NCBI RefSeq assembly: GCF_000007005.1
Contig: NC_002754.1
DNA length: 64,000 bases
Source of the DNA: Saccharolobus solfataricus P2
Lineage (GTDB): Archaea > Thermoproteota > Thermoprotei_A > Sulfolobales > Sulfolobaceae
Reading direction: 5' to 3' (one strand)
The translations under genes and the position numbers were made by a program. A model generated the notes under the pieces. The model searched no databases, was not told the origin of the DNA, and saw only the letters and a program-made list of their open reading frames with translations. Numbering within the stretch: the first letter of the stretch is position 1; the number at the start of each line of letters is the position of its first letter. Shown here piece after piece: positions 56,430-64,000 of this stretch.

Positions 56430-56454
56430 AAGGGGGCAGAAGACTAATCCGTAA
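56430..56454 (+). mobile_element. left half of an IS200/IS605-type terminal hairpin relic split by the IS stack (right half 60206-60221)
   Basis: rejoined site AAGGGGGCAGAAGACTAATCC-GTAA-GGGCAGGGTAGTTCAC resembles IS200/IS605 ends as recalled. Confidence 0.4.
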
Positions 56455-56799
56455 CGGTAGACCAAAAATCATTTTACAAAAATAATTCTGGTTGAGTAAT
56501 ATCAGATTCTGGAAAAATAATAGAAATTATAGCTTTGTCAAGAATTCAACAACTGAAGAAAGGTTTAAGGTGAGGAAGCCGGCATTATCACGTGGTGAAT
56601 TTAAGGTGGTAACACCGGGTCTTCCCCACTAAAATAATCTTCAACAAATAGCACATAAATTACTTTCCATGTTGAACTTCAAGGGAAAGAAGGCAGAGGA
56701 AGTAGCGAGAGTTCTGGTCTCCGCGTGCTTGTGGAACGACTCTGTAGAGGGCAGATCCAAAGGGTACAACGTATCACCACAAACCGTGAGGAACTACGT

Positions 56800-56878
56800 T
56801 AGTATTTTGGAAAAGTTCTTAGACTATGATCTAGTGGTATATCCTTTGTCTAAAGCTATAAACTTTCTGAAAGCACTA
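56800..56878. mobile_element. 79-bp MITE (SM1-like)
   Basis: absent from copy 2; imperfect TIRs TAGTATTTTGGAAAAGTT / AACTTTCTGAAAGCACTA (13/18); GT duplicated on both sides. Confidence 0.8.
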
Positions 56879-57378
56879 GTGAAAGAGCAGGGAAATGGGG
56901 TAATCGAGAAACTCCTGGAGTCCATGAGAAGAATTTCCATGGAGATGCTCAAGGGAGTGAAGGAAGTAGACATCTCCATAGACTGGACAACCAAGACGTG
57001 GTACGGTAAGCCGGTGAAGGGACTAGGTAGTTCGGCCAAGGGGAACTCGTATAACTACGCCACTGCCACCACGAAGTACAAGGGAATGGTGCTCTTCCTG
57101 GTCTTCGTTCCCCAAGTTAACGGGATGACCAAGGACGAGATCGTGAAGTTCCTCATGGAGTAAATTACGGGAATGGGCTTCAAGGTGAGGCTCGTAACCC
57201 TGGACACGGGCTTCTACACTGTAGAAGTCCTCAAGTTTATATCGCAGTTCAAGTACGTGATCGGAGTTCCCGTGGAGGACGTGAAGGCGTTCAGTAATAA
57301 ATCTTTCGGTCGAATTTTGAGCATAGTATCAGCTACTATTGCCACGCGGACTCTTTCAATCCGCGTGATAGGGGAGGG

Positions 57379-58342
57379 TCACGTCACCTCATAAGGTTTA
57401 TTATTATACCAAACACTCCACACAATCCTAGCCAACTTCCTAGCTAAGGCAGTGTACAGTTTCCTACCCTTCAGTTTATCCTTGTGAGCTTCGTGGAACT
57501 TAAGGAGAGTAGGGTTACGCGAATATTGAGTCTCGGCAAGGAAATAAAACAAGCTACCCAAATACTTGTTACCCCTCTTGGAGATACCCTTTCTAACCTC
57601 AATCCTACCACTCCTCTCAACCACCGGGTCTAAACCGCAATAAGCAACGAAGGATTCAGGTCTTGGGAAGCGCTTAATATCACCCACAATCCCAATTATA
57701 ATCCCAGCTGCCAGTTTCCCTATTCCGGGAATCGTGAGTAACACGTGGTCTTGAGGCACATTACCCTCTATCATTTTCCTCACCTCCTTCAACTCTTCTC
57801 GTGTTTGAAGTAGTGTCCTCGCTAGGACTTGAATCTCACGTAGTACTGTACCAGTGTATTCCAGTTGATACAGTTTTACGTCAGAGAAGTCTCCCTTAGA
57901 GAACTTCTCCAATCTCTCCTCGCTCAACTTCTCCTCGTCGCTCACGAGGAAGAGAGCTCTCCTTAACCTGTTCTCTTGTTTCGTTTGCACATCATTCATG
58001 AAGAGGTAGAGTGATACTAACTCTTTCAAGGGGTTGTTAACGTATTCTCTAGCCTTATTTACCATGTTTTCAAGTTTTTCTGCGTCGTAAAAATCTGTTT
58101 TCTTTCCCCTTACGTCCTTTTCTTTCCATAGCAAGGCTGACTAGTAGGACTTTCACTCCTCTTTCTTTGAAGTATTGGCAAGGTCTCGTTGAGTATACTC
58201 CGGTGGGTTCTATTACGATGATGTTTGGCTTCATGGTTAGTATTTCTTCGTAGCCCTTCTCGTTGTTTGTGAACTTTCTCACCCTCCCCTTACTTGTTAC
58301 CAAGTGTTCTTTTGATACGTCTATTCCAATTACCCCTACCCT
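57379..58342 (-). pseudogene. IS110 recombinase (DEDD RuvC + Tnp domain), frameshifted near 58135
   Basis: GIDVSK, IEPTG, KTDFYDA, GLDPVVERSG catalytic motifs intact but split over ORFs 58070..58447 and 57379..58134. Confidence 0.88.
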
Positions 58343-58345
58343 TGT

Positions 58346-58484
58346 GTCACACCTATATTCGTGAATATTTTCACAATGTTCAGTCCGACTGTAGGGGCTC
58401 GTCACGCCTTCACCCGAAGACTTGGCTTCAGTTACGAGGTCGACCATTTTTCCCCAGCTGAGGAGAATATTACTCTCCCCAGCT
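58346..58484 (-). ncRNA. predicted IS110 bridge RNA (5' hairpin + target-binding loop + donor-binding loop)
   Basis: stems found by eye; guide segments match the insertion site (TACGAGG, GTGAAG) and the element ends (GTTCAGT, ATATA.G). Confidence 0.8.
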
Positions 58485-58977
58485 AATTAACCTATATATA
58501 AGTCTACGAGGAGTTCGACGGAGAGTACACTACCAACAGCAAGAGACATAAGAAGGAAGAGCAGGTTAATTTCAGACTTCTGGTATATGGTAAGGAAATC
58601 GTTAAGAAGAAGAGGAAGGCCGTGATGTATTTCGCAAGAGCAACCAACCTCGACTTGACCAAGAGGGAAGTGCTGGAGCTTTACAACAAGGTTAGGGGTC
58701 CCATTGAGACGTCTTACAAGAATATCAAGACCTTCCTTCCCTTCACGAGCTCCACCAAGTTCGTCTTTCGCGAGTTGATCTTCGTACTGGCCATGGTCTT
58801 CTACTCGCTTTACACCGTGTTCAAGGACGTCATGAGAAGAGAGGAGTTTAGATTGCTTTCATCCTCTGTTTTCTAGATGATCTATCGGATCTTGAGGATT
58901 TTCTAGTTAAACTTGAGAAGACACTTAATAACAAGATAGATTTATTTTTACGGAGGTGATTTTGGGTCTACCGGTTA

Positions 58978-60201
58978 CGGTAGACCAAAATCATTTTACA
59001 AAAAATAATTTTGGTTGGGTAATATCAGATTCTGAAAAATAATAGAATTTATAGCTTTGACAAGAACGCAATTAATTGAAGAAAGATTTAAGGTGAGGAA
59101 GCCGGTATTATCACGTGGTGAAGACAAGGTGATAACACCTGGTCTTCCTCACCAAAATAATCTACAACAAGTAGGGTATAAATTACTTTCCATGTTGAGC
59201 TTCAAGGGAAGAAAGGCGGAGGAGGTATCGAGAGTTCTGGTCTCCGCGTGCTTGTGGAACGACTCCGTGGAAAGCAAGTCCAAAGGGTATAACGTGTCAC
59301 CACAGACCGTGAGGAACTACGTGGAGGAGCAGGGAACTGAGGTGATCGAGAAGCTATTAGAGTCCATGAGGAGGATTTCCATGGAGATACTCAAGGGAGT
59401 GAAGGAAGTCGACATCTCCATAGACTGGACAACCAAGACGTGGTATGGTAAGCCGGTGGAGGGACTGGGTAGTTCAGCCAAGGGGAACTCGTGGAACTAC
59501 GCTACCGCGACCACGAAGTATCAGAATATGGTGCTCCTCCTAGCTTTCGTTCCCCAAGTTAACGGGATGAGCAAGGATGAGATCGTGAAGCTTCTCATGG
59601 AGCAAATTGTGGGAATGGGCTTCAAGGTGGGGCTCGTAACCTTGGACGCGGGATTCTACACCGTGGAAGTCCTCAAGTTCATATCGCAGTTCAAGTTCGT
59701 GATAGGAGTCCCTGTGGGGGACGTGAAGATCTACGAGGAGTTCGACGGAGAGTACACGACAAACAGTAAGAGGCATAAGAAGGAAGAGCAGGTCAAGTTC
59801 AGACTCCTGGTGTATGGTAAGGAAATCGTTAAGAAGAGGAAGAAGACCGTGGTGTACTTCGCGAGGGCGACCAACCTCGACCTACCCAAGAGGGAAGTGC
59901 TGAAGTTGTACAACAAGGTTAGGAGTCCCATTGAGACGTCTTACAGGAACATCAAGGCCTTCCTTCCCTTCACGAGCTCCACCAAGTTCATCTTCCGCGA
60001 GTTGATCTTCGTGCTGGCCATGATCTTCTACTCGCTTTACACCGTGTTTAAGAACGTCATGACAAGAGAGGAGTTTAGATTGCTGCTCATCCTCTGCTTT
60101 CTAGACGATTTATCTGATCTAAAGGATTTTATATTTAATCTTGAGGAAACACTTATTAATACTATAGATTTATTTTTATGGAGGTGATTTTGGGTCTACC
60201 G
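58978..60201 (+). mobile_element. ISH3-family IS (ISC1225-like), intact copy 2, 1224 bp
   Basis: TIRs at 58978 and 60186-60201; GTTA duplicated at 58974-58977 and 60202-60205. Confidence 0.95.
59129..60187 (+). CDS. ISH3 DDE transposase
   Basis: open frame; DWT, LDAGF, IETSY acidic triad; likely GTG start 59129 (track ORF opens at TTG 59057). Confidence 0.92.
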   Translation: MITPGLPHQNNLQQVGYKLLSMLSFKGRKAEEVSRVLVSACLWNDSVESKSKGYNVSPQTVRNYVEEQGTEVIEKLLESMRRISMEILKGVKEVDISIDWTTKTWYGKPVEGLGSSAKGNSWNYATATTKYQNMVLLLAFVPQVNGMSKDEIVKLLMEQIVGMGFKVGLVTLDAGFYTVEVLKFISQFKFVIGVPVGDVKIYEEFDGEYTTNSKRHKKEEQVKFRLLVYGKEIVKKRKKTVVYFARATNLDLPKREVLKLYNKVRSPIETSYRNIKAFLPFTSSTKFIFRELIFVLAMIFYSLYTVFKNVMTREEFRLLLILCFLDDLSDLKDFIFNLEETLINTIDLFLWR

Positions 60202-60238
60202 GTTAGGGCAGGGTAGTTCACTTGATGTGCAAAAGGAA

Positions 60239-62882: not shown

Positions 62883-63246
62883 TTTAAGTAATGTGGTATA
62901 TAAAAGTGCTTAAAAATCTTACTACTATCAAATTTTTAGAATATTTAAATTCACGAGCACTTGGTTATCTTTTTTCAATGAGGATACATAACTTAGCAAA
63001 TGGAAAACTTAAATTACTATCTTCAGTTTTTATTTAATATTCTTCACGATTACTATATTTTCACTAATAACGATTGTACTAGTTTAAACTGTATCTGTTT
63101 TAGAAATTATTACAACTTTATAGATTCTTGTCAAGAAGAGCGCTTAGACTGTAACACATTTGCATAACTTTTAAATACTTTTAATCATTTCACAATATGA
63201 TCTTTATTATGATTATGTTTATATATTATTTCCTCTACATTATAAA

Positions 63247-63438
63247 TTGATGAACTCCATACTGATGACGGGCTATGCTCACGAGGTATTGGGGGCGACA
63301 AATACGGATGGGAGGGTAGTGGTGTTTCCCTCGACTAGCCCCAATGAGTTGAGGGTGAGTGTGTATGAGCCCTCAAGAGGGGTGCCCGTGGCGGAATTAG
63401 AAGTGGTTAAAAGTAAGCAGAAGTTACGCCACGGGTAA
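63247..63438 (+). pseudogene. 3' relic of an IS200/IS605 tnpB gene with overlapping structured RNA
   Basis: GC-richer island; TGYAHEVLGATNT resembles degenerate CG...DRDVxGAxNI; three hairpins. Confidence 0.55.
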
Positions 63439-63491
63439 ACACTAAATATCGGTAGCTGATCATTTTTAAACAGTGCTAGATAAGTTAGTAT

Positions 63492-64000
63492 ATGGAAGAA
63501 AATTTAGACAGTAGTGTATTGGAAGCTCCAATAATTAACGTAACTCCACCAGGTTCTAAATCACTTAAGTTGTTAAAAGACCAAGAAGAGTATGAAACTT
63601 CAGCTATAAACTACCCTAAGTACTTTAAGATAGCAATAGATAAGGCTCAAGGTTCAACAGTAACTGATGTTGATGGTAATGTGTATATAGATCTGGTTAC
63701 CGGTATATCTGTTGTCAATCTAGGTCATAATAATCCCTTTGTGAGGAAGAGAGTTCAAGAACAGTTAGAAAAGGTTTGGCACACATTAGAGGTACCTACG
63801 GAAATTAGGGTTAACTTTAGTAAAAAATTATTATCAACTCTAGGAATGAGAGCTAAATTATTATTTACTACAACTGGGGCAGATGCGGTGGAAGCTGCAG
63901 TAAAGATAGCTAGATTCATAACTGGAAAGAAGACTATAATTGCATTTGAGGGGTCTTATCATGGAATAACTGCCGGTACTTTGGGTCTCACCGGTGCTAA
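63492..64000 (+). CDS. gabT: 4-aminobutyrate aminotransferase-like class III aminotransferase (partial, runs off the window)
   Basis: MEENLDS... open to the edge; D.DGN.YID, NLGHNNP, TTGADAVEAA.K, FEGSYHG. Confidence 0.85.
   Translation, partial: MEENLDSSVLEAPIINVTPPGSKSLKLLKDQEEYETSAINYPKYFKIAIDKAQGSTVTDVDGNVYIDLVTGISVVNLGHNNPFVRKRVQEQLEKVWHTLEVPTEIRVNFSKKLLSTLGMRAKLLFTTTGADAVEAAVKIARFITGKKTIIAFEGSYHGITAGTLGLTGA

Follow-up and report, generated by a model that had tools for sequence, protein, structure and literature searches.

A predicted bridge RNA at the left end of a decayed ISC1228 element that reads its landing site in an ISH3 transposase gene of Saccharolobus solfataricus P2

We analyzed a 64,000-nt stretch of the Saccharolobus solfataricus P2 chromosome (contig NC_002754.1; the whole stretch is called the window). 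Its segment 58500-57288 on the minus strand is very probably a decayed copy of ISC1228, an insertion sequence (IS) of the IS110 family, whose left end encodes a two-loop bridge RNA reading the element's own landing site, which lies in a transposase gene of the ISH3 family. An IS110 bridge RNA that reads this insertion site and the element's own ends had been proposed from the letters of the window alone (the original prediction), and comparison with relatives supports it. The assignment to ISC1228 is based on a protein nearly identical to the ISfinder ISC1228 protein printed in Supp. Table 5 of PMC11208160. Coordinates in descending order refer to the minus strand throughout.

Results

The predicted RNA is ~150 nt long (58484-58332) and is made up of a 5' hairpin (SL1), a target-binding stem-loop and a donor-binding stem-loop (Table 1). 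The target loop holds a left and a right target guide (LTG and RTG), matching the left and right target (LT and RT) in the host gene, and the donor loop a left and a right donor guide (LDG and RDG), matching the left and right donor (LD and RD) at the ends of the element. The string matches listed in the original prediction are all present where it had placed them. The block GTGAAGGCGT (58413-58404) is the reverse complement, at 10 of 10 positions, of the right junction ACG-CC-TTCAC (57290-57281), with five of these bases contributed by the RTG, two by the core guide and three by the handshake, and ATATAGGTGT (58358-58349) pairs with the left junction at 8 of 10, one of the two mismatches being a G.T wobble. 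At the left junctions of a multicopy set of relatives, group A, the RDG block fits ACA-CC-TATAT at all 10 positions. The left guides share their sense with the top strand, to which the right guides are complementary, as in IS621 (PMC11208160). The assignment of the handshake bases is also borne out, as in nearly all copies CGT of the target loop pairs with ACG at the right end (L062 and L063 read CTG) and TGT of the donor loop faces the three nucleotides before the core, matching ACA at 3 of 3 positions in group A and AGA at 2 of 3 in the window, with AGT facing ACT in L062 and L063.

Folded alone, the window RNA forms the 5' hairpin and two stem-loops with internal loops, at -52 kcal/mol and with a minimum free energy (MFE) z-score of -3.7. 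The two-loop fold that had been drawn for this region therefore finds support both in the MFE structure and in the consensus structure of the relatives described below. In a rough extrapolation of nearest-neighbor folding to 75-85 °C, SL1 and the donor stem-loop persist and the target stem-loop melts in naked RNA, which suggests that the latter may depend on protein at such temperatures. With positions fixed by the family alignment, we estimate the chance of the 5-nt RTG match at p ~1e-3 and that of the 7-nt LTG match within 3-5 registers at p ~2-3e-4.

Relatives were collected by scans with the C-terminal piece of the recombinase, which gave 3 loci in species-representative genomes and 57 loci in metagenomes (loci carry the prefix L), and copies from complete genomes of S. 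solfataricus, Sulfolobus sp. E5-1-F, Acidianus brierleyi, S. islandicus and Sulfurisphaera ohwakuensis were added by exact-protein look-up; metagenomes and these look-ups provide most of the data on relatives. The left-end alignment comprises 20 distinct sequences with a mean identity of 84%. Mean column entropy across the 20 RNAs is 0.26 bits in the scaffold, 1.60 in the 7 columns of the LTG, 1.55 in the 5 columns of the RTG, and 0 in the LDG, the RDG and the core guides, so that the hypervariable columns are exactly the positions that the original prediction had named as LTG and RTG. The contrast is also seen in the closest relative, L061 (an intact copy in another S. solfataricus strain, with a 96% identical protein), which differs from the window copy at 9 of the 14 target-guide positions and at ~2% of positions elsewhere. 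The consensus structure has 40 pairs; 97% of its cells are paired, compared with ~40% when the partners are slid by 1-3 columns. Compensatory changes were seen at 7 pairs, which belong to SL1, to the long stem around the donor loop, to the donor loop's outer pair and to its inner hairpin; within the donor stem-loop these include GC<->AU at the outer pair in 8 sequences and AU<->GC in the inner hairpin in 3 sequences. These features are those of a conserved structured RNA with two internal loops; the region lies, however, inside an annotated open reading frame (ORF), a point to which we return.

The target guides tend to agree with the flanks of the copies that carry them. Among 17 distinct guide/flank events, with positions fixed by the alignment, the RTG is complementary to its own flank at 5 of 5 positions in six lineages, and the LTG agrees at 6 or more of 7 positions in 10 of the 17; when guide-flank pairings were shuffled, none of 20,000 trials reached either count. 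The six full RTG/flank matches are those of the window (GTGAA/TTCAC), group A (GTAGT/ACTAC), L042 (GTATT/AATAC), L062 (GCAAG/CTTGC), L081 (AAGTG/CACTT) and L082 (AGTGT/ACACT), and as L042 is a variant of group A, its pair amounts to clean covariation. It is exceedingly improbable that the matches are chance similarity in a low-complexity, A+T-rich left end. The match between RDG and RD (ATATA/TATAT) is indeed of low complexity, and 7-mers recur by chance in long sequences, but the matches are specific in position and strand, different sequences occupy the same alignment columns in independent relatives, and the permutations never attained the observed concordance.

The donor guides present a different picture. 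They are complementary to the ends of their own element, and both partners are essentially invariant, which makes this concordance and not covariation. There is scarcely any variation between them from which covariation of the donor loop could be judged, and the variant right end of L031 comes from a truncated remnant that has no RNA. Of the expectation that LTG and RTG would covary with the flanks while LDG and RDG would track the ends, the first part is upheld by the permutations and limited by the misfits listed below, and the second is seen as shared invariance.

We assign the core as CC. The right end reads ...ACTGAACG-CC in nearly all copies and the left junction CC-TATATAG in almost all, and the core guides are an invariant GG in both right guides. 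The exceptions on the right are rare single-base variants, an extra T in L062 and L063 (ACTGAAC-TG-CC, Sulfolobus sp. E5-1-F) and one remnant with TC. The element has no terminal inverted repeats and takes the form LT-CC/TATATAG...ACTGAACG/CC-RT (slashes mark its boundaries), with a core copy at each junction and a single one in the empty site: the unoccupied group A site GAGGGAA-ACA-CC-ACTAC has one CC, whereas occupied copies have two. The CT core of the original prediction is contradicted by these data, and the window's right junction reads ACG-CC-TTCAC, not GC-CT-TCAC. A one-base loss relative to the intact paralogue, which the CT register had implied, is ruled out by the CC core of the relatives; the empty site CCTCGTA-GA-C(C/T)-TTCAC has the same length as the paralogous CCTCGTA-GA-TC-TTCAC, and therefore no base was lost. 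The left guides do not read the core, for the RNA has AC (LTG) or AT (LDG) at the corresponding positions, and only L062 and L063 have CC. The claim that the left guides end 2 nt before a CT is thus correct in that they stop short of the core, and by 2 nt in the window, and wrong as to the core itself. Across the family the distance from LTG to core ranges from 1 to 3 nt: 2 nt is modal (the window, L012, L080, L081 and the unoccupied L004-type site), 3 nt is found in group A, where the unoccupied site confirms it, and 1 nt in L062, L063 and the occupied L004 copy. No single spacing rule fits all copies.

The gene interrupted in the window belongs to a diverged and decayed ISC1225-like element, and the insertion lies inside the codons of the motif DVK-x-YEE; DVKVYEEF is found in 34 of the 58 ISH3 homologues in which the motif was located. 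The predicted target, CCTCGTA-NN-CC-TTCAC, is the coding sequence of this conserved motif (DVKVYEE) in relatives. S. islandicus REY15A and matching read-set assemblies have a perfect site (CCTCGTA-CA-CC-TTCAC: all seven LT bases, the CC core and all five RT bases), S. shibatae has one with a single LT mismatch (CCTCATA-GA-CC-TTCAC), and the canonical ISC1225 copies of S. solfataricus, which have an Ile codon here, read CCTCGTA-GA-TC-TTCAC, with TC at the core, and are unoccupied. The interrupted copy was most likely of the Val/CC form originally, and the CT at its left junction would be a later transition.

The recombinase is of the expected type. An intact S. solfataricus relative (P0002) scores 178 bits against NCBIfam NF033542, "IS110 family RNA-guided transposase," and aligns to the IS621 and ISCro4 structures over both domains, with the catalytic motifs GID, IExTG (as IEPTG), KTDxxDA (as KTDFYDA) and SK(R/A)G (as SKRG) all kept. 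The element thus has a DEDD (RuvC-like) domain and a Tnp domain with a catalytic serine, though the window copy is frameshifted: its two ORF pieces (58336-58070 and 58134-57379) overlap, the frame is broken between the IEPTG and KTDxxDA motifs, and there is a one-base length difference from L061 within an A-rich run of the gene. Because of this frameshift, the window copy is incapable of moving alone, but its RNA could still act with a recombinase from another copy. Intact relatives are present in other S. solfataricus strains and in other Sulfolobales.

Table 1. Coordinates of the ISC1228 copy, its predicted RNA and the host and target sites in the window
Feature	Position	Strand	Remarks
ISC1228 copy body	57288-58500	-	1213 bp plus one 2-bp core copy per side; homology from left end TATATA(TA)GG to right end ...ACTGAACG
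5' hairpin SL1	58456-58484	-	In MFE and consensus structures; compensatory changes at 3 pairs (UA<->CG, CG<->UA, AU<->GC)
Target-binding stem-loop	58401-58444	-	Outer stem GUCG/UGAC, internal loop, inner hairpin CUGAAG..CUUCGG (58431-58414); stems invariant in 20 sequences
LTG	58431-58439	-	Variable 7-mer CCUCGUA (58439-58433) plus mostly fixed AC
RTG block	58404-58413	-	GUGAA (58413-58409), core guide GG (58408-58407), handshake CGU (58406-58404)
Donor-binding stem-loop	58332-58398	-	8-bp stem GCCCCUAC/GUAGGGGU around GUCG/(U)GAC, internal loop, inner hairpin 58375-58360
LDG	58378-58384	-	ACUGAAC, invariant in 20 aligned RNAs; equals right end 57295-57289, 7/7
RDG block	58349-58358	-	AUAUA (58358-58354), core guide GG (58353-58352), handshake UGU (58351-58349); invariant
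LT in host ISH3-like gene	58505-58511	-	CCTCGTA, 7/7 identical to LTG; then spacer GA (58504-58503)
Left core copy	58501-58502	-	CT in window copy; CC in almost all relatives, including the closest, L061
Left end	58491-58500	-	TATATATAGG, conserved start of all copies; first 5 nt are RD, read by RDG
Right end (LD) and right core copy	57286-57295	-	ACTGAAC-G, then CC (57287-57286)
RT in host ISH3-like gene	57281-57285	-	TTCAC, 5/5 complementary to RTG
Recombinase, N-terminal piece	58070-58336	-	GIDVSK, IEPTG; Pfam DEDD_Tnp_IS110 (PF01548), weak; ends in frameshift
Recombinase, C-terminal piece	57379-58134	-	KTDxxDA, Tnp domain with SKRG serine; Pfam Transposase_20 (PF02371), E 1.7e-23; NCBIfam NF033542, 144 bits
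Right-end hairpin	57343-57367	-	Contains ATTGAAAG (57360-57353); conserved, in all relatives
Host element, 5' part	56451-57285	+	Diverged, decayed ISC1225-like (ISH3-family) element; ~88% nt identity to intact neighbor; DUF4322
Host element, 3' part	58503-58983	+	Same element; 89% nt identity to intact neighbor
Unoccupied paralogous site	59723-59738	-	CCTCGTA-GA-TC-TTCAC in intact ISC1225 copy (gene 59057-60187, plus strand); all 12 guide-read bases, core TC (Ile codon)
Unoccupied site, L004-type guides	63375-63390	-	CACGGGC-AC-CC-CTCTT
Unoccupied site, group A guides	63316-63332	-	GAGGGAA-ACA-CC-ACTAC

Discussion

Several observations weigh against a bridge RNA that reads its own landing site. 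In every copy the recombinase frame stays open across both loops and down to the first catalytic Asp (58447-58310 in the window), and therefore some of the conservation could reflect protein coding. Roughly half of the copies misfit their own guides, on both sides (L002, L006, L008, L061 and L083) or on the right side (L004, L009, L012, L079 and L080). The left core of the window copy is CT (58502-58501) instead of CC, a form that occurs elsewhere only at the left junction of L062, and in IS621 nothing corresponds to the variable gap of 1-3 nt that separates left guide from core. A scan of 56500-59200 against Rfam 15 returned only noise at E<=10 and no matching family; no second insertion with the CCTCGTA/GTGAA guide pair turned up in any of the collections searched; and literature and full-text searches found neither a description of an archaeal bridge RNA nor transcript evidence. 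Public Cappable-seq and RNA-seq datasets covering S. solfataricus P2 exist as GSE141290 and GSE226026 (cited in PMC10883916).

The open frame bears on the view that the internal copies of ends and flanks act at the DNA level or through protein contacts, as subterminal repeats or as the coding sequence of an N-terminal extension. Besides the frame itself, the 3' strand of the target-loop outer stem contains an in-frame GTG that is invariant, 28 codons before the catalytic Asp, and a near-invariant ATG, at which the annotated genes start, lies at the 5' side of the same stem, 42 codons before it. In the ISC1228 subfamily a canonical start codon is missing from the stretch that joins the donor loop to GIDVSK, and the annotated proteins therefore begin with ~38 residues from the guide-RNA region. 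On the other hand, the NCBIfam family model and the IS621 and ISCro4 structures cover the recombinase only from residue 39, the ATG frame is closed by a +1 indel in one clade, and the stems show compensatory changes. The arrangement of sense left guides and antisense right guides is that of IS621 RNA pairing, where protein-binding repeats predict no such pattern, and at the DNA level there is no model that accounts for internal copies of an element's own flanks. Every codon position of the scaffold is conserved, whereas the coding sequence has diverged to ~75% nucleotide identity; constraint on the RNA therefore appears to dominate over constraint on the protein, and we consider action at the DNA level or through protein contacts very improbable. 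The description of the 5' end as non-coding nevertheless has to be modified: the frame runs through the RNA and annotated genes start inside it, and what stands of the claim is the dominance of RNA-level constraint.

The concordance of guides and flanks is a tendency, not a rule, and the misfits mean that trans-mobilization, recombination between copies or later changes of guides must be invoked alongside a bridge RNA. For L004 the window itself suggests a history. Two unoccupied target sites stand 43 nt apart at 63390-63316 (Table 1), and L004 combines the left flank of the CACGGGC site with the right flank of the GAGGGAA site, as recombination between two neighboring copies would explain. 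In L061 (1925-1950) the target guides ATGGGAA/GCACA misfit the flanks, and the left flank TCTCGTAA-CC agrees with the LTG of the window copy (CCTCGTAAC) at 8 of 9 positions; insertion in trans by a window-type RNA, or replacement of the guides after insertion, is possible, with a probability of chance agreement of ~0.1 after multiple testing. The guides of the L002 group also misfit their flanks, the LTG CCCCTTG matching the right flank (CC-CCCTTG) and not the left, and the RTG fitting neither side.

L034 (2719-3290) and L042 (2696-3251) are non-autonomous mini-elements of ~555-570 bp with the same deletion structure, which retain the complete bridge RNA together with the right end and an internal piece of 115 nt, and right ends of this type recur on many contigs of metagenome Ga0208549. 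Because the RTG of L042, GTATT, fits its own flank AATAC, this copy seems to have been mobilized by means of its own RNA and a recombinase provided in trans.

A further question is whether the ISH3 gene is anything more than an incidental landing place, with a genuine bridge RNA whose guide pair met a 12-nt match once. The single insertion with these guides accords with that reading, as do the TC core of the unoccupied canonical ISC1225 copies in this genome and the unrelated intergenic repeats targeted by other family members. Against it, the 7+2+5 bases read by the RNA fall on the most conserved protein motif of ISH3 and are present exactly, or with one mismatch, in several Sulfolobales species. 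An unrelated family member has likewise inserted within an ISH3-like transposase gene: the L002 group (L002, L015, L016, L017 and L020; the same locus in a Marsarchaeota metagenome-assembled genome and in several metagenomes) lies after the codons for ...YTIFKG, ~310 bp from the DVKVYEE motif. Targeting of repeats and mobile elements by the IS110 and IS1111 groups is, moreover, well known (repetitive extragenic palindromic (REP) sequences and Tn21 inverted repeats; cited in PMC11208160). An incidental landing strikes us as rather unlikely on balance. A bridge RNA programmed against a conserved ISH3 stretch, as had been proposed, holds at the sequence level, with exact sites in the REY15A copies; specialization on ISH3 elements as a habit is well motivated and would be inferred from one event.

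The predicted ISC1228 RNA resembles the bridge RNA of IS621 from E. coli, which was described together with its recombinase by Durrant et al. 2024 (PMC11208160) and Hiraizumi et al. 2024 (PMC11208158). Both elements have a DEDD RuvC-like and Tnp (serine) recombinase and no terminal inverted repeats, a left-end RNA with a 5' hairpin and two internal-loop stem-loops, sense left guides, antisense right guides that extend over the core, handshake bases located 3' of these guides, and a 2-bp core duplicated at both junctions. They differ in the core (CC in ISC1228, CT in IS621), in the left guides, which in ISC1228 are 7-9 nt long and end 1-3 nt before the core whereas IS621 pairs contiguously through it (7 nt + 2), in the 3-nt handshake and in the location of the RNA inside an annotated ORF. 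The recombinases have low protein similarity (phmmer E ~1e-11), and the host of ISC1228 is an archaeal hyperthermoacidophile that grows near 80 °C. ISCro4/IS622 (PDB 9t56; bioRxiv 10.1101/2025.05.14.653916) belongs to the same family, follows the same two-loop logic and has a recombinase that aligns over both domains; unlike ISC1228 it is bacterial, mesophilic and engineered for human cells, and the differences noted for IS621 apply to it as well.

By homology to IS621, the bridge RNA would be bound by the DEDD/serine recombinase of the element, and the circular junction of right end, CC and left end (RE-CC-LE) would be recognized as the donor. Strands would be exchanged at the CC core, after which the 3-nt handshake guides (CGU and UGU) would pair with the incoming non-cognate strand. 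The expected product is CCTCGTA-GA-C(C>T)/IS/CC-TTCAC within the DVK(V)YEE codons of the ISC1225-like ISH3 transposase. Production of the RNA, its recombinase binding, the chemistry and an activity at about 80 °C are predicted here by analogy with that system.

ISC1228 and ISC1229, which are listed in ISfinder and for S. solfataricus P2 (PMC10883916), are the same element family, and S. solfataricus and S. islandicus carry IS110 copies that are mostly decaying remnants (PMC10883916). Supp. Table 5 of the ISfinder survey (PMC11208160) leaves the field "Detected Bridge RNA End" empty for ISC1228, ISC1229 and ISC1190, and S. islandicus homologues are already named "RNA-guided transposase" by NCBI on grounds of homology. 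The present analysis would thus give a coordinate-level bridge RNA to an archaeal hyperthermoacidophile IS110 clade in which the original survey had detected none, and would account for the long-noted site specificity of ISC1228/1229-type elements. It does not point to a new mechanism; rather, it would extend the bacterial one to hyperthermophilic archaea. As an archaeal example it also bears on the proposed kinship of IS110 recombinases and their bridge RNAs with archaeal Nop5 and C/D-box RNAs.

Other IS110-family elements home in on a repeated or mobile element as ISC1228 would, namely IS4321/IS5075 of the IS1111 group, which target Tn21 inverted repeats, and the REP-targeting ISPpu9/ISPpu10, and they are precedents for an IS that lands in another IS. 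The IS1111 group, however, has its guide RNA in the right end, and the targets of these elements are non-coding ends or repeats, whereas that of ISC1228 is a conserved coding motif of a transposase gene. What the window would illustrate is one mobile element homing into the conserved coding motif of another.

We also considered, and entertain with more doubt than conviction, that the ISC1228/1229 clade is a distinct and naturally thermostable branch of bridge recombinases. Such a branch would have its own recognition geometry, with a CC core read only by the right guides and left guides set back by 1-3 nt, a guide RNA embedded in the 5' part of the recombinase frame, target-guide cassettes exchanged between copies that are 96-98% identical, and bridge RNA mini-elements moved in trans; one transcript could then serve as both guide and message. 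If an intact orthologue were to work at 65-80 °C and prove reprogrammable, it would be the first hyperthermophilic programmable recombinase and a genetic tool for the Sulfolobales. The intact orthologues are nominated as candidates for a thermostable programmable recombinase, and the clade offers many natural guide/target pairs and unoccupied sites as test substrates.

Beyond the RNA, the ends of the element have features of their own. The left end begins with the TATA-like TATATATA, the longer TATATATAGG being a possible archaeal TATA box, and the right end has a conserved TTTATTA that in the circular form would lie ~26 nt upstream of SL1; a promoter role for TATATATA or TTTATTA is conjecture. 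The right-end hairpin contains ATTGAAAG, which we take to be the 3'-terminal motif of Sulfolobus CRISPR repeats. The CRISPR-repeat protein Cbp1 binds strongly in the 3' flank of ISC1229 copies (PMC10883916), and the hairpin at 57367-57343 is a likely candidate for a Cbp1 site. Two other leads were abandoned: 14 viral-contig matches to a 16-nt word of the donor loop lay in unrelated genes and were discarded as chance, and a relationship to a K-turn or C/D box, suggested by CUGA after the LTG, was dropped, as this CUGA sits in a Watson-Crick stem.

Rearranged copies were seen at two further loci. At L007 (1785-1830) a right end and CC run straight into the first 11 nt of a left end (TATATAGGTTT), a chromosomal junction of the donor type RE-CC-LE and perhaps the remnant of a tandem copy. 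At L013 (2100-2470) the 5' part of the element, including the bridge RNA, is inverted relative to the recombinase gene, with the breakpoint at the palindrome CCTAGG. In the window, the two unoccupied sites at 63390-63316 share one conserved intergenic element, of which hot-spring metagenomes have multiple copies, and a scan of 62900-63800 against Rfam gave only noise. The interrupted and the intact ISC1225 copies are arranged head to tail without a gap at 56451-60211, the end of the first (~58983) meeting the start of the second (~58975), and a further adjacent pair of this kind is found at ~2.684 Mb in S. solfataricus P1 (L092). Finally, a decayed fragment resembling the right-end region of ISC1228/1229-type elements (78% over 54 nt), without the remaining element, lies at ~1945-2000 on the minus strand of the window.

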